Shown piece by piece: positions 42,793 to 56,600 of a DNA stretch of 64,000 nt. Location of the stretch: sequence record ON529850.1; one strand, written 5' to 3'. The notes beneath the pieces were generated by a model. It made no database searches. It worked only from the letters and a program-made list of their open reading frames with translations, and had not been told where the DNA came from. The position numbers were made by a program, and so were the translations under genes. Every line of letters starts with the position of its first letter. Position 1 is the first letter of the stretch.

Positions 42793-42799
42793 ACAATAG

Positions 42800-42874: not shown

Positions 42875-42957
42875 ATACTGAAAGGCGTATCTCCACCTCT
42901 CAGGTCGTCTATGCACTGGATCGCATAATCCTTCGTTATGCGCTCTACAGCATAAAA

Positions 42958-43032
42958 TGGTCCTCGAACTTGGAATCGAACCAAGATCATCCGATTATCG
43001 GTCGGGTGCACTAGCCGTTGTGCTATTCGAGG
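42958..43032 (-). tRNA. tRNA-Ile(GAU), C33
   Basis: Loop CCGAUAA; CCUCGAA/UUCGAGG; CCA. Confidence 0.85.
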
Positions 43033-43034
43033 GC

Positions 43035-43109
43035 TGGTAGCGGATGCAGGAATCGCACCTGCGCATGTCGGCGTGTCATACCGATGCCTTTCTACTTGGC
43101 TAATCCGCC
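43035..43109 (-). tRNA. tRNA-Val(GAC), T-loop UGCGAUU
   Basis: Loop AUGACAC; CCA. Confidence 0.82.
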
Positions 43110-43123
43110 ACACAGGAAAGGTG

Positions 43124-43198
43124 TGGCCCACTCGGGAGCGCTCGCATCTCCGTCTCGGGGATTTCACTCCCGCGCTACTCTATCTCAGCTACGAGTGG
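43124..43198 (-). tRNA. tRNA-Phe(GAA), atypical T-arm
   Basis: Loop GUGAAAU; CCACUCG/CGAGUGG; T-loop UGCGAGC; CCA. Confidence 0.72.
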
Positions 43199-43199
43199 A

Positions 43200-43282
43200 T
43201 GGTGGGTGGTTGAGGCATCGAACCTCTCCCGTTAGGCGCGGTGTTACAGACCGCTGTCGGAGCCAACCGACTTTAACCACCC
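43200..43282 (-). tRNA. tRNA-Tyr(GUA)
   Basis: Loop CUGUAAC; variable arm present; 5-bp D-stem; CCA. Confidence 0.85.
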
Positions 43283-43336
43283 GAAATTTTATCAGTCTCC
43301 GCCAGTCATGGCGATCTCCTGGGATGTGTAAAAGAA

Positions 43337-43366
43337 AAGGCCCGCCTGGATTTCCAGGCGGGCCTT
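43337..43366 (-). terminator. Intrinsic terminator directly upstream of the left tRNA operon (attenuator)
   Basis: ggcccgcctgg/ccaggcgggcc stem followed by ttttctttt on the minus strand. Confidence 0.85.
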
Positions 43367-43393
43367 CGAAGCTTGTTGCTGACTGTCTGAGGA

Positions 43394-43489
43394 CTATCCG
43401 CCCACCAAACCTTCGCACATGCACGAACGGCCCGCCCGGTAAAACCGGACGACGCGAATGTTCTGCACGTTTTGGCGATAGGTCATCAT
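43394..43489 (-). CDS. Putative leader peptide (31 aa, leaderless)
   Basis: MMTYRQNVQNIRVVRFYRAGRSCMCEGLVGG; ATG at the predicted TSS; contains GGCGGGCC, complementary to the terminator 5' arm. Confidence 0.6.
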   Translation of the reverse strand: MMTYRQNVQNIRVVRFYRAGRSCMCEGLVGG

Positions 43490-43496
43490 GGATTTG

Positions 43497-43525
43497 CTTT
43501 TACGCGATCTCTTTTATCGTGTCAA
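43497..43525 (-). promoter_or_regulatory. sigma70-like promoter of the left tRNA operon
   Basis: TTGACA, 17 nt, TAAAAG. Confidence 0.65.
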
Positions 43526-43716
43526 CTATTTCTTGGCGTGAATCCAAGATTTTTCAAAATCGGGCTCCCAAACGCCCCAATTCCCAACAGTCGGATAGTC
43601 CCGGTAACGCCATCCGCCGCAGTGCCGGCACATCGCTTCCAGCTGGAGACGTTCTTCGGGAAAGGGCTCGCAGTTGCCCCAAACAGCGCACGCGGGATCG
43701 CCTTCTTCACCGTCCG

Positions 43717-44259
43717 TCATCCGAGACGGACGCTCCGACGATGCGACGCGAACTTCTTCAAAAGCATGGAACGCTTCAACGAGGAGACCCGATCGATGTT
43801 GCGGATTCCGTCAAGATGATCCAGCTCATGCTGGATGCAGATCGCCTTGTATCCGGACCCGTAAAGGGTCTGGCGCTCACCCTGGACGTCGCTGTATTCG
43901 ACCGTCACCTCGCGGTGGCGGCTGACGTCGAAGAAGACGCCTGGCATGGACAGGCAGCCCTCCGGAAGCGACACCATGTCGTCCGACCGATCGATGATGA
44001 CGGGATTGATCAGCACCAGCTTGGCAAGGCCCGGCAACATGCTTTGGGTCGGCAGCGGACCATTGGGAAGATCAAGCATGGTGAACATCCGCACCGGAAC
44101 GCCCACCTGAACCGCCGCCAGGCCCGCGCCGTCCGCCGTCAGCATGGTGTGCAGCATGTCGTGCGCCAGCGTGAGGAGGTCTTCATCGATCTCGGTGATT
44201 TCGGTCGAGACCTGACGCATCAACGGATCAGTGCACGGCAGGATTTGACGAAGCGCCAT
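43717..44259 (-). CDS. def: Peptide deformylase
   Basis: All three motifs: GAGLAAVQVG, EGCLS, QHELDHLDG. Confidence 0.96.
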   Translation of the reverse strand: MALRQILPCTDPLMRQVSTEITEIDEDLLTLAHDMLHTMLTADGAGLAAVQVGVPVRMFTMLDLPNGPLPTQSMLPGLAKLVLINPVIIDRSDDMVSLPEGCLSMPGVFFDVSRHREVTVEYSDVQGERQTLYGSGYKAICIQHELDHLDGIRNIDRVSSLKRSMLLKKFASHRRSVRLG

Positions 44260-44498
44260 CAGGTCAAGGTCCCCATGCCGCCGGCAGTGGTGGTGCGACC
44301 ATCCCGCCAGCGCCCCACCAGACTGACCAAATGGTCCGAGCGCATCTCCAGCTCCTCCAGGACGTCAAGCGCTTGCATCAAAGCCACGCGCGCGTCTTCC
44401 AGGCCGATGTTCTGGAGCTGGACGAGACGGCCCCCGACCATGACCTGATAGCCATGATACGGGGGCGTGCCGGCCGATGCGTTATCGGCGTCGGGCAT
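44259..44498 (-). CDS. Hypothetical protein
   Basis: Stop/start coupled to both neighbours. Confidence 0.6.
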   Translation of the reverse strand: MPDADNASAGTPPYHGYQVMVGGRLVQLQNIGLEDARVALMQALDVLEELEMRSDHLVSLVGRWRDGRTTTAGGMGTLT

Positions 44499-44788
44499 CA
44501 GACTTCACCGAGCGCCGACATATACAGGTCCAGGATGGCGTCTTCTTCCTGACGCTTGGCCTTGTCCTGCTTACGCAGGCGGATGACCTTACGCAGGATT
44601 TTGACGTCGTAGCCCTCGCCCTTGGCCTCGGCGAAGACCTCCTTCATGTCCGCCATGACGGCCTGCTTATCCTCTTCGAGTCGCTCCAGGCGCTCGATGA
44701 TGGAACGCAGACGACCCTGGGCCGAAGAGGTCAGAGCGTCGGCGTTCGTGAAGGTGGTGTCGCCGTCGGTCGTGGTGGGGTGAATCAT
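44498..44788 (-). CDS. gapR: GapR (DUF2312/UPF0335) nucleoid-associated protein
   Basis: LRSIIER.ERLEE.K....D.KEVFAEAK..GYD.KILR.VI.LRK.D...R.EE.A.LDLY..ALG. Confidence 0.93.
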   Translation of the reverse strand: MIHPTTTDGDTTFTNADALTSSAQGRLRSIIERLERLEEDKQAVMADMKEVFAEAKGEGYDVKILRKVIRLRKQDKAKRQEEDAILDLYMSALGEV

Positions 44789-44809
44789 TCTGTTCTCACA
44801 GGCGTTGCG

Positions 44810-45034
44810 TCACTGAGTGACAAGGAAATGAAGAATCGCCAGAAGATCGCGATCGACACGCGGGTCTTGCGCCTTCTGTTCGATGATGCGCAGGGCAGCC
44901 TTTCGCCGTGCGACCTGTCGGCCCACAACTATATTGCCATGCTGTTCTATGGCGTTTTCCAACTCTTCCGGGTCGACATAGGTGGAAATCGGATCGCCAT
45001 ATTTGCGGGCGCCGGGAAAGCGAAACTCAGTCAT
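44810..45034 (-). CDS. Hypothetical protein
   Basis: Start MTEFRF at 45034 with GGAGGAGG RBS. Confidence 0.6.
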   Translation of the reverse strand: MTEFRFPGARKYGDPISTYVDPEELENAIEQHGNIVVGRQVARRKAALRIIEQKAQDPRVDRDLLAILHFLVTQ

Positions 45035-45176
45035 CCGTCCCACCCTCCTCCGCCACAAATCGTCCGTCGACGAAGGCTCCGACACGGGTGACGCCGTTCA
45101 GGCGCTGAACCAGCTGCCCGTCCTCAATCCAGTAGTAGGGGATGCCCCACTCCTCATGGAAAAGAACGTCGGTCAC
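45027..45176 (-). CDS. Small hypothetical protein (49 aa)
   Basis: Not in the track. GTGA overlap with the upstream stop; TDVLFHEEWGIPYYWIEDGQLVQRLNGVTRVGAFVDGRFVAEEGGTDD. Confidence 0.6.
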   Translation of the reverse strand: MTDVLFHEEWGIPYYWIEDGQLVQRLNGVTRVGAFVDGRFVAEEGGTDD

Positions 45177-45475
45177 GCTTCACCGGGGCGTGCGGCGTAG
45201 GGCGCGAAGGTGAAGTGATTGGGCGCCGCGACCGGCGGCAGATCATCGCCCGTGATCGGGCGGATGAAAAAGCGCATCAGCGCATTGTCGACGTTCTGCC
45301 AGGACGCCGCCTTCCATTCATCGCGAGCCGCTTCCCAGGTGGGAAAGACGCCCCGAACCACGACGGCCTGCGGATTACGAAACGCCGCCTGGAACGTCTC
45401 CTTGTCTCGGGCGGGGTCCGTGACGGCCAAGTCCGCCATCTCTCCACCGTAGACAGAATAACCGCAGACGCACAT
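45173..45475 (-). CDS. DUF4170-like protein
   Basis: VYGGE...D......VV.GVFP.W.AA...W.A.....VDNA.MRFFI pattern typical of alphaproteobacteria. Confidence 0.72.
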   Translation of the reverse strand: MCVCGYSVYGGEMADLAVTDPARDKETFQAAFRNPQAVVVRGVFPTWEAARDEWKAASWQNVDNALMRFFIRPITGDDLPPVAAPNHFTFAPYAARPGEA

Positions 45476-46239
45476 CAGCCGATCTCCACGATCAAATTGG
45501 GGTCGAAGTTCGGGTTCAACTCGTGCCCGATATAGCCGCGCGGATTGGTCAGCACGCGCGTCTTGCCGATCTGGTAGTCGCTGGAATCGTGCATGTGCCC
45601 GTGAACCCACAGGTCCGGTTCATACTCCAGGATCAGCGGCTCCAGGCGGGACGCATAGCAGGGGTTGAGTTCGCTGCCCCGATAACGGGGATGGCTGGAC
45701 CGCTCCGAGGGCGCATGGTGGGTCACCACCACGGTCGGACCGTCATGCGACAGGCGCAGTTGCTCACGCAAGAAGAAGACGCTGCGCGTATGCAGCGACA
45801 AAACCGCTTCAGGGGTGAGCAGGCGCATCGGTTCGGTTTCGATCTGCCGGTAGTCCGTCATGCCGCGCCTGGCCGCCATCATCGACAGATACTGGGTGCC
45901 GTAGAGATTGAAATCCGTCCAAAGGGTCGCGCCCAGGAACCGCACGCCGTCGATCACGAGCGCCTCGTCATCCAGAACGTGAACCGAAGACCCCAGCTCG
46001 ACCGCCTTGGCCTTCATTTTCTCGATGTGGCGTTTGATCCGACGCTTGCCGTAGAACTCGTGATTGCCGGGAACGTAGACGACCGGAACGCCAGGAAAAT
46101 GGCGATCCGCCCAGATCACGCCCACAACACCCGTGGCGGCGTCGCCAGCCAGGACCAGCACATCGCAAGGCGCCGGCGTGTAGTCGCGGCCCATGCCGCC
46201 GAACTCCAGGTGCAGGTCGCTCAGAATGTTGATGCGCAC
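45475..46239 (-). CDS. Calcineurin-like metallophosphoesterase
   Basis: SDLH, LAGD, GNHE, VTHH, WVHGH.H, NPRGY motifs. Confidence 0.93.
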   Translation of the reverse strand: MRINILSDLHLEFGGMGRDYTPAPCDVLVLAGDAATGVVGVIWADRHFPGVPVVYVPGNHEFYGKRRIKRHIEKMKAKAVELGSSVHVLDDEALVIDGVRFLGATLWTDFNLYGTQYLSMMAARRGMTDYRQIETEPMRLLTPEAVLSLHTRSVFFLREQLRLSHDGPTVVVTHHAPSERSSHPRYRGSELNPCYASRLEPLILEYEPDLWVHGHMHDSSDYQIGKTRVLTNPRGYIGHELNPNFDPNLIVEIG

Positions 46240-46256
46240 GCGTATCCCCGTAAAAC

Positions 46257-46375
46257 TGGAGCGGGTGGGAAGACTTGAACTTCCGCCTCCGGGTTAGCGA
46301 CCCGGCACTCCTGATCTCGGCCGAGACCCGCAACCCGGTTCGGCCGAACCTGCTGCGCCCTAGAGCTTCACCCGC
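46257..46375 (-). tRNA. 119-nt tRNA-like RNA: Gly-type acceptor, GCU (Ser) anticodon, 52-nt D-loop insertion
   Basis: GCGGGUG/CACCCGC, U73, CCA; CCGGG-UCGCUAA-CCCGG; GGAAG-UUCAAGU-CUUCC; short variable loop. Confidence 0.72.
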
Positions 46376-46379
46376 ATAA

Positions 46380-46610
46380 GGCGGCAGGAGTTTTAAAGGT
46401 GATGCGTCACCGGGCAAGCCCCCTGCCAGAAACCCCGTCTCCGCTTTTGTGAGGTCCAGAGACGAACGACCCTTCAAAGGCTCACATGGCACGACGTCGT
46501 CTCACGCGCTCCAGGCGTAGTCGCCCGAAACCGCAAGCCCGAGAGGTGGTGCGCGATGGTATCGCCTTCCCGAGGCGACGCCTTGCGACGCCGCGATCTT
46601 GTGTGGGGAT
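46380..46610 (-). ncRNA. Candidate structured RNA (~230 nt) upstream of the 119-nt tRNA
   Basis: Follows terminator 46647-46674 and TTGACG (46638-46633); helices UCGCC/GGCGA, UGUGAG/CUCACA, GGCAGGGG/CUCCUGCC, GGUGA/UCACC. Confidence 0.45.
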
Positions 46611-46646
46611 TACTGGCACTGTTCGACACGGGCGTCAACAAAGAAA

Positions 46647-46674
46647 AACGCCCCGGCGTTTCGGCCGGGGCGTT
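46647..46674 (-). terminator. Intrinsic terminator
   Basis: aacgccccggc/gccggggcgtt followed by tttcttt on the minus strand. Confidence 0.85.
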
Positions 46675-46676
46675 CT

Positions 46677-46994
46677 TCAGAGGTTCATCATCCACTGCTT
46701 GCGGTAGCGCGTGAAATCCTTCCAGGATTTGCCGGCGCGGCGGGACGCCATGATGTCGTCCCAGGAGGACGGCAGATGCTTCCGGTTCCCCCGCACGGAG
46801 ACGACACGATCATGGACGTCACCGGCGTTTCGACGGCGTTCCTGCATGGTGCGCGGATGCCGGAAATACTGCCGCCAGACGTGGCGGAACTCGCGGCAAC
46901 GCAGAGGATCGCCCTGGACCCCGCCGTAGTAATAGGTCCAGCAGCCGATCCACAGAAATCCGTGGTGGGTGATGCGTTGGAATTGGGGCTTCAA
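46677..46994 (-). CDS. Hypothetical phage protein
   Basis: R.P.T.QERR...R..R..LPSSWDD.......KSWK...RKQW; followed by a terminator. Confidence 0.75.
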   Translation of the reverse strand: MKPQFQRITHHGFLWIGCWTYYYGGVQGDPLRCREFRHVWRQYFRHPRTMQERRRNAGDVHDRVVSVRGNRKHLPSSWDDIMASRRAGKSWKDFTRYRKQWMMNL

Positions 46995-47097
46995 AACAGC
47001 CTCCTGTCAGGTTGATTACCTAACGGGTGCTGTGCTCCAGGTAGAATTTGATCATCATGGCCCTATGATACGGCAAGCTGGACCGTTGGTCCAGAAA

Positions 47098-47186
47098 TGG
47101 CGGATGGGGCAGGGATCGAACCCGCGTAACCCTCTCGGGTGTCGACCGCTTAGCAAGCGGCTGCCTTACCTCTCGGCCACCCATCC
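47098..47186 (-). tRNA. tRNA-Ser(GCU)
   Basis: Loop UUGCUAA; long variable arm; G73; CCA. Confidence 0.93.
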
Positions 47187-47193
47187 GTGGGTG

Positions 47194-47278
47194 TGGCGGT
47201 GAACCAGGGAATCGAACCCTCAACCTTGCGGTCGGCTACGGTTTTCAAGGCCGCTTGTCCCCATGGACGCTGCTCACC
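47194..47278 (-). tRNA. tRNA-Ser(UGA), allo-tRNA-like D-arm and 4-bp T-stem
   Basis: Loop CUUGAAA; D-arm GUCC-AUGG-GGAC; AGGG-UUCGAUU-CCCU; CCA. Confidence 0.82.
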
Positions 47279-47285
47279 ATAAAGG

Positions 47286-47375
47286 TGGCGGACGGCGCGC
47301 GATTCGAACGCGCGGACCCTTGCGGGCCGCCTGCTTTCCGGGCAGGTGCCTTAAGCCAGACTCAGCCAGCCGTCC
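47286..47375 (-). tRNA. tRNA-Ser(GGA), C33
   Basis: Loop CCGGAAA; long variable arm; G73; CCA. Confidence 0.9.
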
Positions 47376-47380
47376 GTTGT

Positions 47381-47598
47381 TGGTGGAGGCGAGGGGATTC
47401 GAACCCCCGTAGACGCCGAACCCCCGCATTACCAGGGGCCGATCTTCGGTTTAGAACGCGTGTGCCGCTCTGACCATCTTCCGCAGGCCAGGTGGTCTAT
47501 CGTAACGACCCCGTCGATCGGTTGCCTCTGCGCCCCGGTTTTACCCGGACCGTTATCCTGTTCCACGGTGCTCATGCCGAAACCCGAGCGACGCCCCC
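47381..47598 (-). ncRNA. ssrA: Compact one-piece tmRNA-like RNA (218 nt)
   Basis: 5' GGGGGCG pairs with 3' CGCCUCC including G3.U70; A73; CCA; T-arm GGGG-UUCGAAU-CCCC; GGGUUUCGGC D-analogue; no anticodon arm. Confidence 0.78.
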
Positions 47599-47607
47599 GT
47601 GAAGAAA

Positions 47608-47695
47608 TGGAGGATGGTGTGGGATTCGAACCCACGGAACCTTGCGGTCCTCCGGCTTTCGAAACCGGTGCGATCGGCCACTCCGCCAACCATCC
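47608..47695 (-). tRNA. tRNA-Ser(CGA)
   Basis: Loop UUCGAAA; long variable arm; U73; CCA. Confidence 0.9.
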
Positions 47696-47702
47696 ATATC
47701 AG

Positions 47703-47888
47703 TCAGGCGGCCGCCGGACTGTAGTTGTCGATGTCGTCGACCCGGATCGCCGTTCCCGCCGCGATTTGGCGGTCGGCGCTCAACAGGTCGGCGACCAGGT
47801 CCTCCGCCGAGACGTCGCCGCCGGAAGTGGCGAACTTGACGTTCACCACTCCATTGTCGTACATCTCGGCGATCGCTGAGCGATCCAT
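47703..47888 (-). CDS. Small hypothetical protein (61 aa) inside the tRNA array
   Basis: AAAGG RBS; acidic, protein-like composition; fills the gap between two tRNAs. Confidence 0.65.
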   Translation of the reverse strand: MDRSAIAEMYDNGVVNVKFATSGGDVSAEDLVADLLSADRQIAAGTAIRVDDIDNYSPAAA

Positions 47889-47921
47889 GGCATGCCTTTC
47901 TGCCGGCGTCGCCGGCGGTTA

Positions 47922-47997
47922 TGGTGGAGATGAGGGGAGTCGAACCCCTGACATCCTGCTTGCAAGGCAGGTGCTCTACCAACTGAGCTACATCCCC
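47922..47997 (-). tRNA. tRNA-Ala(UGC)
   Basis: Canonical; G3.U70; loop CUUGCAA; CCA. Confidence 0.96.
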
Positions 47998-48027
47998 AAG
48001 ATGGGTGTCAGTTTTCCTGACAATTGT

Positions 48028-48103
48028 TGGGCCTGGCACTCGGATTCGAACCGAGCCATGCGGCTCCACAAACCGCCGCCTCCACCGCAGAGGCTTTACC
48101 AGG
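48028..48103 (-). tRNA. tRNA-His(GUG)
   Basis: Loop UUGUGGA; C73; no encoded G-1; CCA. Confidence 0.87.
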
Positions 48104-48105
48104 AT

Positions 48106-48193
48106 TGGTCGCAGCGACAGGAATCGAACCTGCCCGGCCTTTCGGCCACCAGCCTCTCATGCTGGCGCGTCTACCAGACTCCGCCACGCTGCG
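48106..48193 (-). tRNA. tRNA-Leu(GAG)
   Basis: Loop AUGAGAG; variable arm; A73; CCA. Confidence 0.92.
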
Positions 48194-48202
48194 ATCAAAA
48201 GT

Positions 48203-48288
48203 TGGTGCCGGTGGTGGGATTCGCACCCACCCGCCACTAAGGACACCAGTTTCTGAAACTGGCGCGTCTACTGCTTCGCCACACCGGC
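48203..48288 (-). tRNA. tRNA-Leu(CAG), T-loop UGCGAAU
   Basis: Loop UUCAGAA; variable arm; A73; CCA. Confidence 0.87.
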
Positions 48289-48298
48289 AATGATGTGT

Positions 48299-48384
48299 TG
48301 GTGCCCGCCCCCGGACTCGAACCGGGACGCCACGAGGGCCACGCCTTTTGAGGACGCTGCGTCTACCTTTCCGTCCAGACGGGC
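48299..48384 (-). tRNA. tRNA-Leu(CAA)
   Basis: Loop CUCAAAA; variable arm; A73; CCA. Confidence 0.88.
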
Positions 48385-48393
48385 TTGAGAAGA

Positions 48394-48479
48394 TGGTGCG
48401 GGCGAGAGGATTCGAACCTCCCCGGCACAAGGCCACGGGCATCTGAAGCCCGCGCGGCTACCAGCTTCGCCACGCCCGC
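48394..48479 (-). tRNA. tRNA-Leu(CAG), second divergent copy
   Basis: Loop UUCAGAU; canonical T-loop; CCA. Confidence 0.92.
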
Positions 48480-48483
48480 ACTT

Positions 48484-48565
48484 TGGAGAACCACGGTGGA
48501 GTCGAACCACTTGCGCCTGGATTAAAAGCCCAATCCCGGCCACCCGGATTTAACGCTCGTGGTCC
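48484..48565 (-). tRNA. tRNA-Lys(UUU), (8/4)-type fold
   Basis: GGACCACG/CGUGGUUC; GUGG-UUCGACU-CCAC; 9-nt linker before a tetraloop D-arm; loop CUUUUAA; CCA. Confidence 0.75.
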
Positions 48566-48580
48566 TCGATTCTCGAATAT

Positions 48581-48667
48581 TGGAGGATGTGGTGGGACTC
48601 GAACCCACGATGGACTTTCGTCAGAGGATTAAGAGCCCTCCCCTCTCGCCGCTGAGGTGACACATCC
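48581..48667 (-). tRNA. tRNA-Lys(CUU) with a variable arm
   Basis: Loop CUCUUAA; arm GAC-GAAA-GUC; U73; CCA. Confidence 0.85.
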
Positions 48668-48703
48668 GTTTAAACTGTATAGCGTCTCCATGAAGACTGT
48701 TGA

Positions 48704-48774
48704 TGGTGCCAGCGGAGCGGGATCGCACCCTCCTCCAACCACTACGAAAGGCTGGTCCTCCTAGAGGCGCCGGC
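48704..48774 (-). tRNA. tRNA-Thr(CGU), atypical (mini D-arm, extended anticodon stem)
   Basis: GCCGGCG/CGCUGGC; CCUC-UAG-GAGG; CCAGCC/GGUUGG around UUCGUAG; A73; CCA. Confidence 0.62.
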
Positions 48775-48782
48775 GTTGTTCT

Positions 48783-48853
48783 TGGTGCCAAGAGTGGGAG
48801 TCAAACCCACCCTGAACCCCTACCACGGGCTCGTCCGGTCACCCGGCCTTGGC
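48783..48853 (-). tRNA. tRNA-Thr(GGU), atypical (mini D-arm, 6-bp anticodon stem)
   Basis: GCCAAGG/UCUUGGC; CCGG-GUGA-CCGG; GAGCCC-GUGGUAG-GGGUUC; 3-nt variable loop; CCA. Confidence 0.68.
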
Positions 48854-48860
48854 GTTATCC

Positions 48861-48935
48861 TGGTCAGAGCGGGAGGTCTCGAACCTCCGACCCCTGCCTT
48901 CCCGAGACAGTGCGCTACCCCTGCGCCACACTCTG
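48861..48935 (-). tRNA. tRNA-Pro(GGG), C33 and A37
   Basis: C1-G72, A73; loop UCGGGAA; CCA. Confidence 0.87.
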
Positions 48936-48938
48936 ATC

Positions 48939-49013
48939 TGGTCTGGGCCGAGGGGATCGAACCCCCGTCATCCGGCTCCCAAAGCCGGCGCCTAACCGCT
49001 CGGCCAGACCCAG
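48939..49013 (-). tRNA. tRNA-Pro(UGG)
   Basis: Loop UUUGGGA; CCA. Confidence 0.93.
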
Positions 49014-49028
49014 ATTGTTATTAAGAAA

Positions 49029-49106
49029 TGGTCTGCGCATCAGGATTTGAACCTGAGACCCCCACGCTCCGAAGGTGGTACTCTGACCAGGCTGAGCTAT
49101 ACGCAG
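49029..49106 (-). tRNA. tRNA-Pro(CGG)
   Basis: Loop UUCGGAG; CCA. Confidence 0.92.
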
Positions 49107-49119
49107 ATGTGAAAAACGA

Positions 49120-49150
49120 AAAGGCCCCAGAGGCGTTGCGCCTGGGGCCT
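49120..49150 (-). terminator. Intrinsic terminator directly upstream of the central tRNA operon (attenuator)
   Basis: aggccccag/ctggggcct stem followed by tttcgttttt on the minus strand. Confidence 0.85.
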
Positions 49151-49222
49151 AAAACAGCTGCTGATTTGGGAGTTCAGCAGGTGATCGGCCCCTCGGGCGC
49201 CTCACCTGCTGTAAGGAAGACC

Positions 49223-49360
49223 TTAGATGGTCTCCGTTGCAGAGGTGACGCCACCGGTGGTGGGGGATTTCGGCGACAGCGTGGCCGGCGCATAGGCGAG
49301 CGTCGACAGCGCCGAAGCGGCGGTCGAATGAAGGCTCAGCTTGTGCGACAACTTGGTCAC
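49223..49360 (-). CDS. Putative leader peptide (45 aa, Ser/Thr/Ala-rich)
   Basis: AAGGA RBS, GTG start; MTKLSHKLSLHSTAASALSTLAYAPATLSPKSPTTGGVTSATETI. Confidence 0.55.
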   Translation of the reverse strand: MTKLSHKLSLHSTAASALSTLAYAPATLSPKSPTTGGVTSATETI

Positions 49361-49408
49361 GAGAGAAATCCTTAGAAGGAAGGGCGTCGAAACGCGATTG
49401 AAGCTTCA

Positions 49409-49437
49409 TCTTTACAGCAAGCTTTTTGGCTTGTCAA
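49409..49437 (-). promoter_or_regulatory. sigma70-like promoter of the central tRNA operon
   Basis: TTGACA, 17 nt, TAAAGA. Confidence 0.65.
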
Positions 49438-49518
49438 GCAAAGATCGAAATTTATTTCGAGGGCTGCCCCTCGCGACGATTACTGCCAGATTTCCTGACA
49501 CACGTCAACCTGGAAAGT

Positions 49519-49559
49519 GACGCGCGCGGCCTCGGGGGAGCGGGAAGGCCGCGCGCGTC
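49519..49559 (-). terminator. 14-bp hairpin, probable terminator
   Basis: gacgcgcgcggcct/aggccgcgcgcgtc followed by acttt. Confidence 0.65.
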
Positions 49560-49562
49560 GGG

Positions 49563-49850
49563 TCACACCGGCCTCGGGGACGGGGCGGCCGGATCGGGAG
49601 CGCCGCAGCGGTCGGGAACGCCGCGACGATTCTTCGGGAGCCGCTCGCGCAGTGGCGGGACCGGAACCGGTCCATAGATCACCTCGACGACGCGGCGCCG
49701 GATTTTTCGGGTAGTCGGGAGAGGGACGCCGCGCCGAATCAATTCAGCGCCGGCCGCCGAACTCGAAAGCGATCCTGACAGATAGATGTCCAGAAGCGCC
49801 GAAGTCGGCATGGCGCGCATACGCTGCGCGCGGTGGGGATTATGGACCAT
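49563..49850 (-). CDS. Hypothetical protein
   Basis: GGAGAG RBS; ends at the hairpin. Confidence 0.5.
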   Translation of the reverse strand: MVHNPHRAQRMRAMPTSALLDIYLSGSLSSSAAGAELIRRGVPLPTTRKIRRRVVEVIYGPVPVPPLRERLPKNRRGVPDRCGAPDPAAPSPRPV

Positions 49851-49949
49851 AGGGTCTCTCCATGCTGGGTCTAGCCCAGGCGGAGGACACGCCTAATGGT
49901 TCAGACGCTGTATCGCGTCCATCCGCCTGGGTTAATCAGCGGAGAGGAA

Positions 49950-50144
49950 TCAGGGAATGTCGGTCTTGGTCGGCGCGAACACCGAAACGACCGCGTCGAG
50001 CGCCTTCTTGAGGCGGCTGGGACGCTGGGTCAACGCCGAGGCGCAGACCTTCTTGATCTCGTCGTGGGTCAAGGAGCCTGGGTCGCGCAATCCGCGTGCG
50101 GCGATCGACGCAACAGAGGCGGAGGTGACTTCCTGGCGAGACAT
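49950..50144 (-). CDS. Small hypothetical phage protein
   Basis: TS..VASIAA..L.DP......K.V.ASALTQ. Confidence 0.7.
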   Translation of the reverse strand: MSRQEVTSASVASIAARGLRDPGSLTHDEIKKVCASALTQRPSRLKKALDAVVSVFAPTKTDIP

Positions 50145-50160
50145 GACGTGAAGAAATCCT

Positions 50161-50235
50161 TGGCGAGCCTAACGGGAGTTGAACCCGTCTTTCCAGCGTG
50201 ACAGGCTGGTGTCCTAACCGATAGACGATAGGCCC
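50161..50235 (-). tRNA. tRNA-Asp(GUC)
   Basis: Loop CUGUCAC; G73; CCA. Confidence 0.93.
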
Positions 50236-50263
50236 TTTCCAGGGATGTCGGTCTAGGAGGTGT

Positions 50264-50341
50264 TGGCACAGCCGACGGGGGTCGAACCCGCATTATCCTG
50301 CTTGAAAGGCAGGTTTCCTAGTCCATTTAGAAGACGGCTGC
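50264..50341 (-). tRNA. tRNA-Glu(UUC)
   Basis: Loop CUUUCAA; G73; CCA. Confidence 0.92.
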
Positions 50342-50375
50342 ACAGAACACGAGCCGACCTCTACGAGTACCGCTT

Positions 50376-50441
50376 TTAGGCGGTGCGCGTATCTCGGCCC
50401 GTGAAGGCCTCTCGCTCTCGAATGGACGTCAGGTAGGTCAT
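50376..50441 (-). CDS. Putative leader peptide (21 aa, leaderless)
   Basis: MTYLTSIREREAFTGRDTRTA; ATG 8 nt after the -10 box. Confidence 0.45.
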   Translation of the reverse strand: MTYLTSIREREAFTGRDTRTA

Positions 50442-50448
50442 AACGGGA

Positions 50449-50477
50449 CTATTAACAGAATCGCTTTTCGGTGTCAA
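50449..50477 (-). promoter_or_regulatory. sigma70-like promoter of the Glu/Asp tRNA unit
   Basis: TTGACA, 17 nt, TAATAG. Confidence 0.65.
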
Positions 50478-50647
50478 GAACGACGTCGATCTTTTCGATG
50501 TTTTTCTTCGGGGACGTCCTCGCCGGGCGCTTCCTCAGCGTCCCAGGCCATCATCAAGGCGGCGGCGAAGGCTGGTCCCATGTCCGCTTCCAGCTGGCGC
50601 AAGGCCCGTTCGTTGGACCGTAGGAAAGCCTCGCTGTATTCGAGCAT
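50474..50647 (-). CDS. Small hypothetical protein
   Basis: GAGG RBS before MLEYSEAF; the track extends this ORF to 50752. Confidence 0.5.
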   Translation of the reverse strand: MLEYSEAFLRSNERALRQLEADMGPAFAAALMMAWDAEEAPGEDVPEEKHRKDRRRS

Positions 50648-50779
50648 GTCGACCTCAAATGAACAGGGGCCGACTTCAGCGCGCGCCGTCTGCCGGTTGC
50701 GCCTGGGCGGAAGCAGCGCACCAGTCCTGCTCGACTGGCCCAGCCCCTCCATCTCTATTTGTCAGGTTTGACGTCAAAC

Positions 50780-51092
50780 GTCAATGCGGAAATGCGGCGG
50801 TTACAGCTTCAACCAGCCCTTCAGGGCCTGTGGGTCTTTCGGGCGTCCTGCCCCGCCGCGCCTACTACGACGCCTTTTTCGGCCCCGGCGAACCGGAGAG
50901 GGTAAAAATCGACGGGTGACCGCTACCGGCCTCGCCTGCTGGCCCGTCCCAGCGCCCAACCTCACCGCGCAGCGCCCCTGTGGGCATATGGCCTTCCCGT
51001 CCGAAGACAGACGCCATGCGGTGGTGGCAGGGCCGCTTGCCCTTACACCCGCACGGCCTGGGCGGGGAGAGAGGCAGAGGCGAACCCCGGAA
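50780..51092 (-). ncRNA. Candidate structured RNA (~310 nt) downstream of tRNA-Gly(UCC)
   Basis: Long-range CCCCGCC/GGCGGGG helix, cUUCGg hairpin, GCCC-UGAA-GGGC; shares a 13-mer with the 1201-1782 RNA. Confidence 0.5.
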
Positions 51093-51095
51093 TGA

Positions 51096-51170
51096 TGGAG
51101 CGACCGGCGGGGATCGAACCCGCGCATGTCAGGGTGGAAACCTGATGCCTTTCCGCTTGGCTACGGTCGC
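51096..51170 (-). tRNA. tRNA-Gly(UCC)
   Basis: Loop UUUCCAC; U73; CCA. Confidence 0.93.
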
Positions 51171-51180
51171 GAAAGTAAAG

Positions 51181-51257
51181 TGGAGCGTCCAGTGAGAATC
51201 GAACTCACCCCCCGCGCGTTGGCAACGCGCTGTACCCACCAATAATACGTTGGACGC
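51181..51257 (-). tRNA. tRNA-Gly(GCC)
   Basis: Loop UUGCCAA; U73; CCA. Confidence 0.9.
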
Positions 51258-51267
51258 AAAGTAAATA

Positions 51268-51343
51268 TGGCGCCGGACAAGGGACTCGAACCCTTCACAC
51301 ACAGTTTTGGAGACCGCTGCTCTACCCCATGAGCTAGACCGAC
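51268..51343 (-). tRNA. tRNA-Trp(CCA)
   Basis: Loop CUCCAAA; G73; CCA. Confidence 0.92.
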
Positions 51344-51351
51344 AGGTATCT

Positions 51352-51906
51352 TTACTTAAATCTTTTAACCAGAAACTCCATCACACGTTGCGGTGTAGTT
51401 TCGTCAGCTTTTACGCGAAAGTCAATACGCCCTTCCAACAATTCCAACAACTGTAGATCGATTTCCCTGGCTTCGGCCTCATTGTGATGCCGGCCATAGG
51501 TCTGATAGGCACCGTCTGGGCGCTCCAACCAGATGTTGACGTTGTCGTAGAGATCAAACCGCTCAAACACCTCCCGATGGAAGGCATCCGTTCGATAAGG
51601 CCCGGAGCTGTAGATGCAACTCAGCAGCAGCGGACTATCGGTGACGATCCAATCGACCTGGCCCAGCATGCGACGCTGACGCCGTTCTTGTTCCTCCAGC
51701 ACCTTGCGCTGGTTCGACAAGGAATCGAAATCCCGGTCGAACGAACACTCAGTCGCGTATTCTTCGATCTGGGCCGCCCTGGCCCCATTGATCTTCAGAT
51801 GAAAGAAGGTTCCGGCCTTGACGGTGGATTTACCCGAACACGGGCCGCCCCAAAAGTTCAACACGCGCGTAGGTGCAGGCGAGCCCATGCGAAGGACTTT
51901 CATCAA
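51352..51906 (-). CDS. P-loop NTPase / nucleotide kinase-like (NadR-type AAA)
   Basis: NFWGGPCSGKST Walker A; EYA.E; IVTDSPLLL. Confidence 0.85.
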   Translation of the reverse strand: MMKVLRMGSPAPTRVLNFWGGPCSGKSTVKAGTFFHLKINGARAAQIEEYATECSFDRDFDSLSNQRKVLEEQERRQRRMLGQVDWIVTDSPLLLSCIYSSGPYRTDAFHREVFERFDLYDNVNIWLERPDGAYQTYGRHHNEAEAREIDLQLLELLEGRIDFRVKADETTPQRVMEFLVKRFK

Positions 51907-51946
51907 AGACAGATTTTACAGATAGGCGCGCGACCGCGCCGTGCGG

Positions 51947-52219
51947 TCAGCTACGCCAGAGCGCGTCGTCGTCATCCGAGACAGTGTCTTCGGATGCGCG
52001 ACGCCGACGACCTCGCCCTCGGGCGGGTTCCGGCTCCAGCGCTTCGATCTCCGTCGGCTCTTCATCGGTCGGATCGACCGTTTCCACCGTCGGGGTGACT
52101 TCCACGCGAGTCCACGGCGTGCGCGACCAGCCTTGCTCCAGGACAAGCTTCTGCGCCTTCGACGGAGTAACGTCGAAGGGCTCGCAAAGGTCAGGAGAAT
52201 AGACGCGTTCGGTAGCCAT
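51947..52219 (-). CDS. Hypothetical protein (probably leaderless)
   Basis: ATG 9 nt after the -10 box of the promoter at 52228-52256. Confidence 0.65.
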   Translation of the reverse strand: MATERVYSPDLCEPFDVTPSKAQKLVLEQGWSRTPWTRVEVTPTVETVDPTDEEPTEIEALEPEPARGRGRRRRASEDTVSDDDDALWRS

Positions 52220-52227
52220 GATCGAGC

Positions 52228-52256
52228 ACTTTATACGAAGTTGGCGCGGACGTCAA
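52228..52256 (-). promoter_or_regulatory. sigma70-like promoter
   Basis: TTGACG, 17 nt, TAAAGT. Confidence 0.65.
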
Positions 52257-52268
52257 GAATTACGTCAG

Positions 52269-53051
52269 TCAAATCGACCATTGGAACAAAACCGACTTCT
52301 TCTCTCCCGGCGTGACGGCATATTCCGACTCCAACGGAGTCAGGAAATCGTTCAGAAAGACACCGTCGATGAAGGCTCCGGTTGCGCGATGGGATTGAAC
52401 AAAGCGCGGCGGGCCTCCCGCTCCATAGGCGTCAAATCCCTGCCCCAGACGCCAGCCGTTCAAACGACGCACGACGCGTTCCCCCTGCGTCCAGAGATAG
52501 GCGCGATATTCACCGCGCAGCAGGGTCGTGTTGAGGGCCACCCTCATCATCGCATTTTCCGCCGGCGCGTGTTCGATGTGCGAGAAAACCAATCGATCTA
52601 CCGCATCGTAAAGGCCAAGGCGCACCGCCCCTGAACCCGTCCCCAGCCAGGCGGCGGCGGCCGACAGCTGCATGAAATCCGACGCGACATAGAACCGCTC
52701 GAACAGGATGGTTTCCGCCGGCAATGACGTGTCTTCGGGAGAACCGTCCAACACAATCCCCGGCACCGCATAGCCGCCCTTCGGCAGGTCCACCGCCGTG
52801 ACCCCCTCTACGCGCGCAAGAGGCGCCAAGGCACTATCCCAGACCAGGACACCGTCCTTGCGGGTCAGGGGTGCTCCGCTGGGACCTTGGGCCGGCGCCA
52901 CGCCGCTGACAGCCGCCGGCAGATGGATCGCTTCTGGACGGCCGTCGACACGCAGGTGCAGCTTGCGATCTGCGGTGTTATGTCCGACCTGCCCCGGAAG
53001 GAGATGTGGCCTGGCTCCGGGCGTTGCGGAATGCTTGTTCTGGATAGCCAT
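52269..53051 (-). CDS. Virion fibre-associated protein
   Basis: Coupled to 53051-53659; PGQVGHNTADRKL N-terminus; C-terminal block resembles the C-terminus of the 3020-aa protein. Confidence 0.65.
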   Translation of the reverse strand: MAIQNKHSATPGARPHLLPGQVGHNTADRKLHLRVDGRPEAIHLPAAVSGVAPAQGPSGAPLTRKDGVLVWDSALAPLARVEGVTAVDLPKGGYAVPGIVLDGSPEDTSLPAETILFERFYVASDFMQLSAAAAWLGTGSGAVRLGLYDAVDRLVFSHIEHAPAENAMMRVALNTTLLRGEYRAYLWTQGERVVRRLNGWRLGQGFDAYGAGGPPRFVQSHRATGAFIDGVFLNDFLTPLESEYAVTPGEKKSVLFQWSI

Positions 53052-53659
53052 CAGAGGAATCGCATGGCGACAAGGTGGAACTGGGGAGCCGTGGCGGCGG
53101 GCGTCATCGCTTCGACTTGCTCCAGTAGAAAGTTGGATGACGTGGGCGCGGCGTGAACCGTGTAATACCCCGGTGAGAGTTGGAGGTCGAAGGCCGGCTC
53201 CAACATCATTGCGCCGTTGATGGCGAAATCGTGCGAGAGCACTTCTTCGTTCGCCGCATTCCTGATCTTGACGAAGAGCGTTCCGGTCCCGCCGTTCGAT
53301 CGCACACGAAGTCCAATCAACTGCGCCGGCTCCCCTAGCGCGATTTGCGTGATCCGCTCAGAGGGGAGACCCAGGAAGGCGACCGAAATCGGCGCGCAGC
53401 CCGGCAAAACCCAAAGCTTGCGATCCATGGGCAGCCCGCCGCCGCCGCCCTGAAGCAGGGCGTGCTCAACGCCCTCAGGCGACATCAAGCGGACCTCGTC
53501 ACCCCCCAACGTCCGCTGCGGCAGCAACGGGACGTCCATGGTGAAGGCATCCGTGCCGACACCCAGGACGCGCGCCGCCGGGTCCAAGGTCAGTTCTCCG
53601 GCCGCGCGAGGGACGGCCGGATCAGGATCATATGGAGTAAGGTAGATCGTATCCGACAT
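53051..53659 (-). CDS. Virion fibre-associated protein
   Basis: Start MSDTIY overlaps the 3020-aa stop; paralogous layout to 52269-53051. Confidence 0.65.
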   Translation of the reverse strand: MSDTIYLTPYDPDPAVPRAAGELTLDPAARVLGVGTDAFTMDVPLLPQRTLGGDEVRLMSPEGVEHALLQGGGGGLPMDRKLWVLPGCAPISVAFLGLPSERITQIALGEPAQLIGLRVRSNGGTGTLFVKIRNAANEEVLSHDFAINGAMMLEPAFDLQLSPGYYTVHAAPTSSNFLLEQVEAMTPAATAPQFHLVAMRFL

Positions 53660-56600
53660 CAAATCGTCGCCCACACATAGGCCTCGCTCACCGTCTCACG
53701 ATCGGTGGGCGTAGGCGCGTCCATCAAGTTGCCCGTATCGGGCGCTGAGAGGTCTCCAACCTGCGTCAAATCCTCCGCACGGCCCGAGGGCGCGCGTCGC
53801 GTTGCGAACGTGGGTTGATCCCCCGTAACCGCCAGCATGGCGGCATACCAACCCGGCGCCAGCGTCAGGGCTTGGGTGATCGACTTGGGTCCGACCGGCC
53901 CGCTGCCGGCAACCTGGGCGCTCAGCTCCACCTCTCCAGGCGTCTGAGACGTTTGATCCCAGCGGCAAACACCGAACCGCACCGTCCCCGACGCCGCAAC
54001 AGTGGTGGTCACCCCGAAACGGGTAAAGGCGGTCTCTCGCGCCAGGTAGAAGGGCCGGTAAACCACACGTCCCGCCGACGGCCGGCTGGTCGAGGCGTCC
54101 ATGCTGAAGTCCGTCAGATAGCGGTCTCCAGCCGGCAGCGGGAGCATGACGGGGCGATCATAGACGGGGGCCGCCTTACGCCAGGTCCCGTCAGCATAGA
54201 GGACTTCACCCGTCGCACCTCCTTCCGGAGCCACGCCGCCCAGGGCGAAACGACCCAGGCGATTGGCCTGCACCGCGCCTTGGGCATCTGCCGCGAACAG
54301 AAGCCCGTCGAACTCGTTCAGAGCAATCTCCAGGGGCTCCAAAGCCACAGGCACATTACCCTGCATCAAGGCGCGCTTGTAGCGGATGACCACGCCCTGC
54401 GCGCCATGCACATCCACCCGGTCTCCGTCTTCGACATAGCCTTCGGCCGGTTGAACATAGACCGCCGGAAGCGTCGGCGAGATGGAATATCCTCCAGACC
54501 CTTCCGATTCTGGCGGAGAGACCAGAATGACGGAATCGCTCAGATCGCCATCGACAACCGCCGCCGTCAGCTCCGCCGCAAAACCGCGCGGCGGGGTCAG
54601 ATAGATGCGGTCGAAATAGTTGACGCGAACGTCCGCATTACGCGTGAAGGCCGCCTGCGGCGTTCCCACCAGGATCAGTCCGATGTCACGCGACACGTTG
54701 GCGGGGACTTCGACGAAGGCGCCTTCCTGGATCGACACGAACATCGTGACGATCGGTCCGCCTTGGCTGCCATTGCTGACAATGGCGTGACCTTCACCCG
54801 TTCCGTCCGCACTAGGGAAACCGACCGTGATGTCGTTCTCGAACGGCACGGTGGTGTATTCGAACGGAAGTTCGCCGGCCCCCAGGATCGTTTCGATTCG
54901 GATCGGTCCGCCCAGGTCCCCTTCGCCGGTTTCGTCAGGGCCTCGCAAGTCGCCTTTGGGTGCTTCCGTTCGCACCATCCAGATCGCCTGCGTTCCGGGC
55001 GGCGGAGTCCAGCCCGCGTTACCCGCGCCAAAACCTTCGGGAGCCGTCACAGGAATGACGCTGTCGATCTCACCAACCCACATGTCGGCAACGGACATGT
55101 CCCCGTCAAAGCCCTCGACGCCAATCACCAGAGGATCGAACATCTCAAAGCCGTTGCCGAGGATGTAGTTCATCGGCTGAACGCCGATGGTCGGCAGTCG
55201 ATCAACCTTGAAGTTCACCGCCGCCGAAAGCGTCGTCTGCGGCGGGGTCGGATAGTAGAGATCATCGCCGAGACCCGTGACCACCAAGGCATCCGTCTGC
55301 GGCTGTCCGCCCAGGTCGCCCGAGACGAAGATCGTCGGCAGATAGGCGCCAATGCCGCCCGTGGCGGACCCCTTCGGGTCCATCATCAGGATGGATTCTC
55401 CCAGGTCGCCCGAACCTTGAGCGCCCATGGAAATCGTCCCCACCGGCGCCACCACGGTGACAACCGGAAGCGAGCCCGTCGCCTGAGCCGCTTTCGATCC
55501 CTCAGCCGAACCGGACCCAGACGTCACGAGGATCGTGCCGATCTGGGTGACGTTGACCGTCGCCGGGATGCTCAAGCCGCCTTCAAAGACGGACAGAACC
55601 GCCAGGCCAGGGCCGCCTGCAAGGGCGGGGCTCGCCACGAAGTTCGGCGTGCCGCCAATGCCGACGCCAGGCTGATAGACGAACTTGCCCGTTCCCGCCG
55701 GCGTGCCCGTGTCGGACGTCTCGGTGACGCCTTCATAGAGCATGTCGCCCAGGAAGCCAGAACCGCCACCCGCAGAGCCGGAGCTCGTGCTGTTGTTCAG
55801 GGCGCCGCCGCCGCCGCCGTAATAACCGCCGCCTGCACCCGCACCGGCCGCGCTTGCCCCCGTGGCGCCCTGCACCGTCTCACTACCGTCGAGCGGAAAA
55901 CCATCACCGCCACGCAGGGCCGCGCCGTTACCGTTTCCACCGGTCGTAGAGCCGCCAACGCCTCCAGCGCTCTGGGTGCCGCCCGTTCCGGCGCCTTGCG
56001 TCGTGCCGATGCCATTGCCGCCCGACAAACCGCCGCCGAAACCGCCGCGACGGGCGGAAGTCGCAGACCCCGCGCCGCCGCCGCCGGCAATCGCCACAAG
56101 AACACCGTTACGCCATACACGGGTCGAACCGCCGCCGCCGCCACCGCCGTAGGTGCCGGGACCGCCGCCGCCGCCGTCAGGCCAACCACCCAGGCCACCG
56201 ATGAAGTTGCCCGGCGCGGCGCCGGCGTTCCCCACTTCGACCCGGATGATGTCCCCCGGCTGGAACATGATGATGCCGGACAGGTGTCCGCCGGCGCCGC
56301 CCAGAGAATCCTGCGGCGTAGTGGAATTCACCAGCTGTGACCCCGCGCCGCCACCGCCCCACAGATTGAGGTTCGCGCCACCTTCGAAAGTCGTAATGAA
56401 GTCGCGCGATCCCGCCCGATCGCCCAACAAGGAGGTGTCTCCTTCGGCCAGCGGGGGCAAGGTGGCGCCTGGTGTGAAATCCATCACCACGCGACCATCG
56501 CCGCCCGGCAGGATGCTGGTCTTAGCCGCTTGGACGCCGCCCAGGCCTGCATTATTGGCATAGTCCGGGTCGGTCAACGCCGCCGGCGTCTGTCCAACAC

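Follow-up and report, generated by a model that had tools for sequence, protein, structure and literature searches.

Two compact genes without an acceptor/D-stem linker in Brevundimonas phage vB_BpoS-Gurke are probably threonine tRNAs

We analysed two adjacent minus-strand elements in a 64,000-nt stretch of sequence record ON529850.1 (hereafter the window; window position = record position minus 186000) and conclude that they are probably working phage-encoded elongator tRNA-Thr genes. One (anticodon GGU) is predicted to read ACC and ACU and the other (CGU) to read ACG; on the basis of comparative sequence evidence, we put the probability of this function and this decoding, taken jointly, at about 80%. 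The DNA belongs to Brevundimonas phage vB_BpoS-Gurke (100% identity by megablast over 42000–52000), a 321.5-kb jumbo phage of the Dolichocephalovirinae whose host is B. pondensis LVF1. Both genes lie inside a 193-nt gap between tRNA-Lys(CUU) (48581–48667) and tRNA-Pro(GGG) (48861–48935), and this gap carries no annotation in GenBank for either Gurke or its 95%-identical sister Kikimora. The parts of the two genes are as follows.

48783–48853, minus strand: compact tRNA-Thr(GGU) gene, 71 nt (68 nt plus encoded CCA)
48853–48847 and 48793–48787, minus strand: 5′ and 3′ strands of the GGU acceptor stem, followed by A73 (48786) and CCA (48785–48783)
48846–48843 with 48838–48835, minus strand: GGU D-stem (CCGG/CCGG), enclosing the D-loop GTGA (48842–48839) and followed by a connector (48834–48833)
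48832–48827 with 48819–48814, minus strand: GGU anticodon stem, enclosing the loop GUGGUAG (48826–48820) with anticodon GGT (48824–48822)
48813–48811, minus strand: GGU variable region, AGG
48810–48806 with 48798–48794, minus strand: GGU T-stem, enclosing the T-loop TTTGACT (48805–48799)
48704–48774, minus strand: compact tRNA-Thr(CGU) gene, 71 nt (68 nt plus encoded CCA)
48774–48768 and 48714–48708, minus strand: 5′ and 3′ strands of the CGU acceptor stem, followed by A73 (48707) and CCA (48706–48704)
48767–48764 with 48760–48757, minus strand: CGU D-stem (CCUC/GAGG), enclosing the D-loop TAG (48763–48761) and followed by a connector (48756–48755)
48754–48749 with 48741–48736, minus strand: CGU anticodon stem of six layers, enclosing the loop UUCGUAG (48748–48742) with anticodon CGT (48746–48744)
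48735–48733, minus strand: CGU variable region, GAG
48732–48728 with 48720–48715, minus strand: CGU T-stem with one bulged G, enclosing the T-loop TGCGATC (48727–48721)

Most of an earlier description of the pair (the original prediction) agrees with these positions. It had proposed two 71-nt minus-strand elements with GGU and CGU anticodons, which the sequence contains; a D-stem without a linker, which is found in both genes as a 4-bp helix starting directly after position 7; D-loops of 3–4 nt, which measure 4 nt (GTGA) in the GGU gene and 3 nt (TAG) in the CGU gene; and retention of G1–C72, C2–G71 and A73, all of which are present in both genes together with the encoded CCA. An anticodon stem of at least 6 bp is likewise observed in Gurke, with six standard pairs in the GGU gene and, in the CGU gene, six standard pairs plus a loop-proximal U·U before the 7-nt loop; this count includes an optional C20–G40 pair, and the six-layer register used for comparison across phages counts five CGU pairs plus the U·U, with C20–G40 as the sixth pair. 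The variable loop, proposed to be 3–4 nt, is instead 3 nt in both genes (AGG and GAG), or 2 nt in the CGU gene if C20–G40 pairs. Two features went beyond that description: a 2-nt connector between the D-stem and the anticodon stem, and the bulged G in the T-stem of the Gurke and Kikimora CGU genes. Each acceptor stem has 7 bp including one G–U pair (at 4:69 in the CGU gene). Neither gene has the standard core of U8/N9, a D-loop of 7–11 nt, a 5-bp anticodon stem and a variable loop of 4–5 nt. When 42000–52500 was scanned for 7-bp acceptor stems with NCCA, excluding tRNAs called by ARAGORN, the pair was among nine candidates without an acceptor mismatch.

Both genes are conserved in position among related phages. 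A 181-nt query from the Thr region matched Brevundimonas jumbo phages by blastn, and the CGU gene also matched 18 Caulobacter phage records; in all blastn matches of the 181-nt region the slot was unannotated, the only named feature being the flanking tRNA-Pro. For comparison, we took the Pro-to-Lys (or Pro-to-Leu) gap from 15 phiCbK-like (Dolichocephalovirinae) phages (Gurke and Kikimora; Bambus, Domovoi, Papperlapapp, Kabachok and Marchewka; Bajun; Colossus and CcrPW; Rogue and BL57; Ccr32, Magneto and Karma). All 15 phages read carry both genes in the same slot and order (Pro, GGU, CGU, Lys), and the lineages that keep the two genes include Shapirovirus, Poindextervirus, Colossusvirus and that of the Brevundimonas phages. 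The set comprises ten distinct GGU and eight distinct CGU sequences of 70–73 nt. ARAGORN calls the GGU homologues of Bajun, Rogue and BL57 as tRNA-Thr, and the GenBank record of Bajun annotates its GGU homologue as tRNA-Thr; in the other records inspected, the slot is empty or marked ‘Pseudo’, as in Colossus, where tRNAscan labelled the CGU homologue ‘tRNA-Pseudo’. In the same slot between Pro and Lys, CcrSC (Bertelyvirus) carries a canonical 77-nt tRNA-Thr(CGU), which shares with the compact genes the anticodon, the acceptor sequence GCCG...CGGC-A-CCA, a 7-nt anticodon loop with U33 and A37, and T54 and A58, but differs in having U8/A9, a 9-nt D-loop, a 5-bp anticodon stem and a 5-nt variable loop, is 6 nt longer and is found by all tRNA finders.

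A wider search with three anticodon-arm/D-arm patterns in IMG/VR yielded 121 loci (118 distinct), among which a covariance model identified five true relatives (Karma, Rogue, Colossus, CcrPW and one contig of 220,934 bp); these scans, with their narrow patterns, returned no member from outside this phage subfamily. Sequencing runs matching parts of a 1001-nt stretch were mostly metagenomes, with a few coded as single organisms, and none contained half of the sampled words. A 211-nt wastewater contig, from a library that may be DNA, matches 48699–48852 exactly, and a viral-metagenome run covering 48635–48839 contains a variant in which 48809 and 48795 change together, converting a U–A pair of the T-stem to A–U. 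Environmental contigs of this kind show only that relatives exist in the environment, not that the genes are expressed.

Compensatory changes indicate that the structure is maintained. All homologues fit one layout: a 7-nt acceptor strand, no linker, a D arm of 4-n-4 with a loop of 3–6 nt, a 2-nt connector, an anticodon arm of six layers on either side of a 7-nt loop, a 3-nt variable region, a T arm of 5-7-5, the second 7-nt acceptor strand, N73 and CCA. Since length varies only in the D-loop and at the single bulged T-stem base of the Gurke CGU gene, the sequences could be divided into segments of fixed length, which left the alignment no further freedom. Two MAFFT alignments (A1 and A3) were dropped because they misplaced the D-loop gap (A1 put it within the D-stem, A3 within the acceptor stem); they were replaced by the fixed-length segmentation and by a model-fitted alignment of the 18 distinct sequences (A5). 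By segmentation, the D-stem of the ten GGU sequences contains no mispair: pair 1 is always C–G, and pairs 2–4 take two to four pair types each (pair 2, C–G or G–C; pair 3, G–C, C–G, U–A or U–G; pair 4, G–C, G–U, C–G or A–U). Acceptor pairs 3–7 and T-stem pairs 1–3 of the GGU family switch type too, and covariation in the CGU family is seen at D-stem pairs 2 and 4, in five layers of the anticodon stem and at three pairs of the T-stem. Across A5, pairing is standard in 93.4% of cells (72.9% when shuffled), 14 of the 22 pairs have changed on both sides, and the covariation score is 0.576 (0.198 when shuffled; reached by 0 of 500 shuffles), dropping to 0.09–0.13 in a control that slid the 3′ partners by 1–3 columns and kept relatedness. 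The linker-less D helix itself is 98.6% paired, with three of its four pairs changing on both sides. A D-stem in the canonical register, leaving positions 8 and 9 free, paired in only 43.7% of cases and was rejected. RNAalifold independently predicts the same consensus structure, and segmentation by hand gives the same pairs as A5.

Model R1, a covariance model trained on the GGU family, scores the GGU and CGU genes of the window at 69.7 and 47.0 bits, respectively, and CGU genes in general at 39–58 bits, as against at most 37 bits for the canonical tRNAs of the same loci; the GGU and CGU families therefore share a layout that is absent from ordinary tRNAs. The check on homologues that the original prediction had proposed thus turned up compensatory changes, including in the linker-less D-stem, and its argument that two isoacceptors with a common fold speak against decay gains from a slot kept in 15 phages and from compensation within the helices.

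The D-loop and T-loop also appear to change in step. D-loops that contain GG (TGGATT, GGGATT, TGG, AGG and GTGG) occur with T-loops that start with TTC. In the GGU genes of Gurke and Bambus, the D-loop GTGA is found with a T-loop starting TTT, which reads as a change from G19:C56 to A19:U56, and in the CGU genes of Gurke, Ccr32, Magneto and BL57 the D-loop TAG is found with TGC, which reads as a change from G18·U55 to A18·G55. BL57's close relative Rogue combines TGG with TTC, so that both partners differ together from those of BL57. Overall, GG, GA and AG in the D-loop co-occur one-to-one with TTC, TTT and TGC in the T-loop, and T54 and A58 are kept throughout. One would expect such a pattern if the D-loop, tiny as it is, continues to dock on the T-loop and form the L-shape.

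The identity of the pair is indicated by the positions that do not vary. G1–C72, C2–G71, U33, G35, U36 and A37 are the same in 18 of 18 distinct sequences and the encoded CCA is kept; all 18 have a 7-nt anticodon loop with GGU or CGU, the CGU loop being closed by U·U or U·G, and position 73 is A or U. The known determinants of bacterial threonyl-tRNA synthetase (ThrRS) are G1–C72, C2–G71, G35 and U36. No other Thr tRNA was found in the whole Gurke record, in which the tRNAs outside the window are two for Met and one each for Cys, Ser and Arg. Threonine accounts for 7.5% of codons in 26 long open reading frames of the window with high GC3 (13,005 codons), where its codons are divided among ACG (51%), ACC (41%), ACU (6%) and ACA (2%); given these shares, GGU and CGU together would read about 98% of Thr codons. 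The neighbouring Pro, Leu, Ser, Val and Gly isoacceptors show the same G34/C34 pattern as the GGU/CGU pair.

Several observations weigh against a working tRNA-Thr pair. In the window, ARAGORN calls neither gene, and the Rfam tRNA model RF00005 misses both at its gathering threshold and at E ≤ 10. The minimum-free-energy folds (RNAfold) are the cloverleaves given above for both genes, and the fold z-scores are modest, at −2.1 to −2.8 for the GGU gene and −0.7, no better than shuffles, for the CGU gene. A single-sequence fold is by itself not evidence for real tRNAs and, with marginal significance for GGU and none for CGU, we did not use it as such. The covariation statistics derive from sequences related by descent, A5 was fitted to a model, and the bases of the elbow were assigned by eye. 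The Gurke CGU gene combines a bulged G in the T-stem, a U·U adjoining the anticodon loop and G55 instead of U55. The outer two anticodon-stem layers of the GGU gene are G·A/G·A in Bajun and most Caulobacter phages (C–G and G·A in BL57, C–G and A·C in Rogue, G·A and G–C in Colossus), with six full pairs in Gurke and Bambus, and the CGU genes of the Bambus group have an A·A inside the anticodon stem. Finally, the RNA-labelled runs that contain the stretch are virome, metagenome or wastewater contigs and possibly DNA. As for the remaining irregularities, the loop-proximal CGU layer is U·U, or U·G in BL57 and Rogue, and the next five layers, the A·A of the Bambus group excepted, pair and co-vary; a seventh pair is possible in Gurke, BL57 and Rogue; and there is a U·U at 6:67 in Shapirovirus and a G·G in the T-stem of Bajun.

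The most probable alternative is that the pair encodes tRNA-like RNAs that do not decode; these could draw off host tRNA-directed nucleases or modification enzymes, as decoys or sponges, or serve as RNase P/RNase Z punctuation within the operon. Rejection of the Gurke pair by standard tRNA detectors would be natural in that case, as would features odd for a bacterial tRNA (no U8, G55 in the CGU gene, the U·U by the anticodon loop and the T-stem bulge). A decoy, however, needs no exact keeping of two Thr anticodons, U33, A37, G1–C72 and C2–G71 in lineages that have diverged at most of the remaining stem positions; nor does it need to match the two dominant Thr codons of the phage or to fill the only amino-acid slots missing from its tRNA set, and punctuation is already available, given that spacers of 7–8 nt separate neighbouring bona fide tRNAs. 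We consider non-decoding RNAs improbable. Less likely still are working tRNAs that carry another amino acid or are charged by a phage-specific route, with ACC and ACG reread during infection. The non-canonical core could alter synthetase discrimination and the discriminator base varies between A73 and U73, but the known determinants of bacterial ThrRS are invariant, G3·U70 is absent (the G·U of the Gurke CGU gene sits at 4:69) and no aminoacyl-tRNA synthetase was noticed near the array, the whole proteome not having been scanned. The least credible alternative is that the genes are decaying tRNA-Thr pseudogenes from a canonical ancestor such as the 77-nt Thr(CGU) that CcrSC carries between Pro and Lys, as the ‘tRNA-Pseudo’ label in Colossus and the scattered mismatches (A·A in Bambus, U·U at 6:67 in Shapirovirus, G·G in the Bajun T-stem) might suggest; decay yields neither compensatory double changes in 14 of 22 pairs, nor a 98.6%-paired D-stem, nor coordinated D-loop/T-loop changes, nor two genes present in all 15 phages read at a constant 70–73 nt, and the covariation already largely refutes it.

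If the pair does encode working tRNA-Thr, both RNAs would be transcribed within a Pro–Thr–Lys–Leu tRNA operon, matured like their neighbours, charged with threonine by the host ThrRS and used on the ribosome. Their core is compacted in that nucleotides 8 and 9 are absent and the 4-bp D-stem abuts the acceptor stem, with the D-loop cut to little more than the two bases that form the elbow. The L-shape would be kept, with the longer anticodon helix offsetting the shorter connectors and the D-loop still contacting the T-loop.

Similar layouts occur in other tRNAs. In M. barkeri tRNA-Pyl and the mammalian mitochondrial tRNA-Ser(UCN), a single nucleotide connects the acceptor and D-stems, the D-loop is small, the anticodon stem has 6 bp and the variable region 3 nt, the latter tRNA keeping G18, G19 and T-Psi-C; in the tRNA-Pyl of Ca. 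Methanomethylophilus alvus, the connecting base is missing, the D-loop has 4 nt and the anticodon stem is interrupted (PMC7609411). The tRNA-Pyl of M. alvus comes closest in layout, sharing with the phage genes the 0-nt connector, tiny D-loop, extended irregular anticodon stem and 3-nt variable region; the phage genes add 2 nt after the D-stem, a loop match of the 18:55/19:56 type and a setting in a phage operon. Where tRNA-Pyl is an amber suppressor with CUA, G73 and a dedicated PylRS, the phage genes have GGU or CGU, A73 or U73 and acceptor pairs of the ThrRS type; with neither CUA nor G73 present, the likeness is one of layout only (PylRS was not searched for). Mitochondrial tRNA-Ser(UCN) and M. 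barkeri tRNA-Pyl resemble the phage genes in their short acceptor/D connector, small D-loop, anticodon stem of six layers or 6 bp, 3-nt variable region and, probably, L-shape, but have a connector of 1 nt and organellar or dedicated enzymes, whereas the phage genes have 0 nt there and 2 nt after the D-stem and, unlike mitochondrial or Pyl tRNAs, would need ordinary bacterial ThrRS, EF-Tu and ribosomes. The original prediction, in likening the pair to tRNA-Pyl and mitochondrial tRNA-Ser(UCN), is apt as an analogy (PMC7609411), not as family membership: these tRNAs are analogues rather than relatives, and the type I class is set by layout with no homology implied.

The compact plan is not confined to threonine. 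A 71-nt tRNA-Ala(UGC) in Bambus, Rogue and Ccr32 has a 0-nt linker, the D-loop AGG, a six-layer anticodon stem, a 3-nt variable region and G3·U70, and a 71-nt tRNA-His(GUG) in Rogue follows a near-identical plan, with its D-stem at or next to the acceptor stem. These genes share with the Thr pair the length of 71 nt, the 4-bp D-stem and a 3-nt D-loop ending in GG, but have other identities. The Ccr32 compact Ala gene is unannotated, and both Rogue genes (Ala and His) are absent from its GenBank record. Gurke's own Ala and His genes are canonical and 76 nt long; the compact genes seen in this phage are the Thr pair. The compact Ala and His loci are the following.

L003:7109–7179, minus strand: compact Ala/His locus
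L015:1458–1528, plus strand: compact Ala/His locus
L005:5755–5825, minus strand: compact Ala/His locus
L015:1382–1452, plus strand: compact Ala/His locus

Why the core is compacted admits more than one answer. It is possible that, by analogy with mitochondria, it reflects tolerated erosion with compensation, and it is also possible that it was selected to escape host enzymes that act on tRNA. A bolder version of the second idea is that the compact core is an adaptive redesign across the subfamily (both Thr genes, Ala, His and perhaps more) and not tolerated erosion, in which acceptance by host ThrRS, EF-Tu and ribosome is kept while host tRNA-directed defence nucleases or modification enzymes are evaded; we regard this as a speculative and rather unlikely proposal. 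If it were true, mitochondrion-like tRNA layouts would work naturally in bacterial translation and serve as counter-defence.

The Thr pair sits in a large tRNA array. ARAGORN finds 24 tRNA genes in the window, all on the minus strand, between 42623 and 51343, and the gene order of the block around the pair, compiled from ARAGORN, GenBank and the acceptor-stem/NCCA scan, is also seen in phiCbK-like phages.

47098–49106, minus strand: co-oriented tRNA block, in the order Pro (three), Thr (two), Lys(CUU), Lys(UUU, unannotated), Leu (four), then His, Ala and Ser genes
48854–48860, minus strand: spacer between tRNA-Pro(GGG) and the GGU gene, 7 nt
48775–48782, minus strand: spacer between the two Thr genes, 8 nt
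48668–48703, minus strand: spacer between the CGU gene and tRNA-Lys(CUU), 36 nt

These three spacers are typical for neighbouring genes of the array, and a scan of the minus strand from 49106 to 47098 found no promoter-like or terminator-like sites. Protein-coding neighbours on the minus strand include a calcineurin-like metallophosphoesterase (45475–46239) and an AAA_28 P-loop protein (51352–51906), for which a role in healing RNA ends is conceivable; a peptide deformylase (43717–44259) and PhoH (40024–40842) are also nearby, and an open reading frame of 3020 amino acids (53659–62721, minus strand; 65–70% G+C) lies just downstream of the tRNA region. Among these neighbours of the array, no aminoacyl-tRNA synthetase and no clear enzyme of tRNA repair was noticed.

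Other unusual tRNA-like elements occur in the same array, all on the minus strand. Next to the Thr pair, the annotated tRNA-Lys(CUU) at 48581–48667 is 87 nt long and has an extra hairpin in the variable region, giving a class II-like shape that is unusual for Lys. The unannotated element at 48484–48565 (82 nt) is tRNA-like with the anticodon UUU (Lys), an acceptor stem capable of 8 bp, an enlarged D region and U-CCA; it is missed by ARAGORN and Rfam, and the records of Magneto, Karma and Rogue list its homologue as tRNA-Lys (AAA). An unannotated 85-nt element resembling tRNA-Ser(UGA) (47194–47278), flanked by two annotated Ser genes, gives a sub-threshold Rfam match to tRNA-Sec (29.7 bits), and Domovoi has the equivalent gene annotated as tRNA-Ser; a tmRNA match below the Rfam threshold (31.7 bits, where the gathering score is 47) also lies between two Ser tRNAs (47381–47598). 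The GenBank-unannotated element at 46257–46331 is a weak tRNA match (31.1 bits with Rfam, 27.3 bits with R1) with an unusual anticodon loop. An unannotated 75-nt candidate at 43124–43198 has a perfect 7-bp acceptor stem, G-CCA, a possible GAA anticodon (Phe) and an aberrant-looking T-arm, and is located between Val(GAC) and Tyr, where phiCbK-type phages carry tRNA-Phe. Two unannotated 83-nt elements (42410–42492 and 42510–42592) have perfect acceptor stems, normal T-arms, G-CCA and the apparent anticodons CCG and ACG (Arg), respectively; in each, a hairpin follows the anticodon arm and the D-arm is weak or missing. The second gives a sub-threshold Rfam match to tRNA-Sec (28 bits).

The founding genome paper on phiCbK-like phages (2012), which relied on tRNAscan-SE 1.21 and Rfam, stated that Thr tRNAs are found in none of these phages (PMC3556154); the compact core of the pair explains that report. 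A review of this layout covers Pyl, Sec, allo-tRNAs and mitochondria and does not mention phages (PMC7609411), and the literature searched yielded no account of these genes or of phage tRNAs that lack the linker. The pair is a structural variant that is new to its setting and undescribed in that literature. Standard tRNA finders under-count phage tRNAs and, if the two genes work, earlier reports have understated the tRNA sets of these phages; with the other unannotated candidates added, and if these too prove true, Gurke would have tRNAs for all 20 amino acids. A linker-less tRNA that serves an ordinary amino acid with ordinary bacterial enzymes would be a natural test of what ThrRS, EF-Tu, RNase P and the ribosome need from the tRNA core, and a test case both for the engineering of orthogonal tRNAs and for the divergence of phage tRNAs to escape tRNA-targeting immunity.

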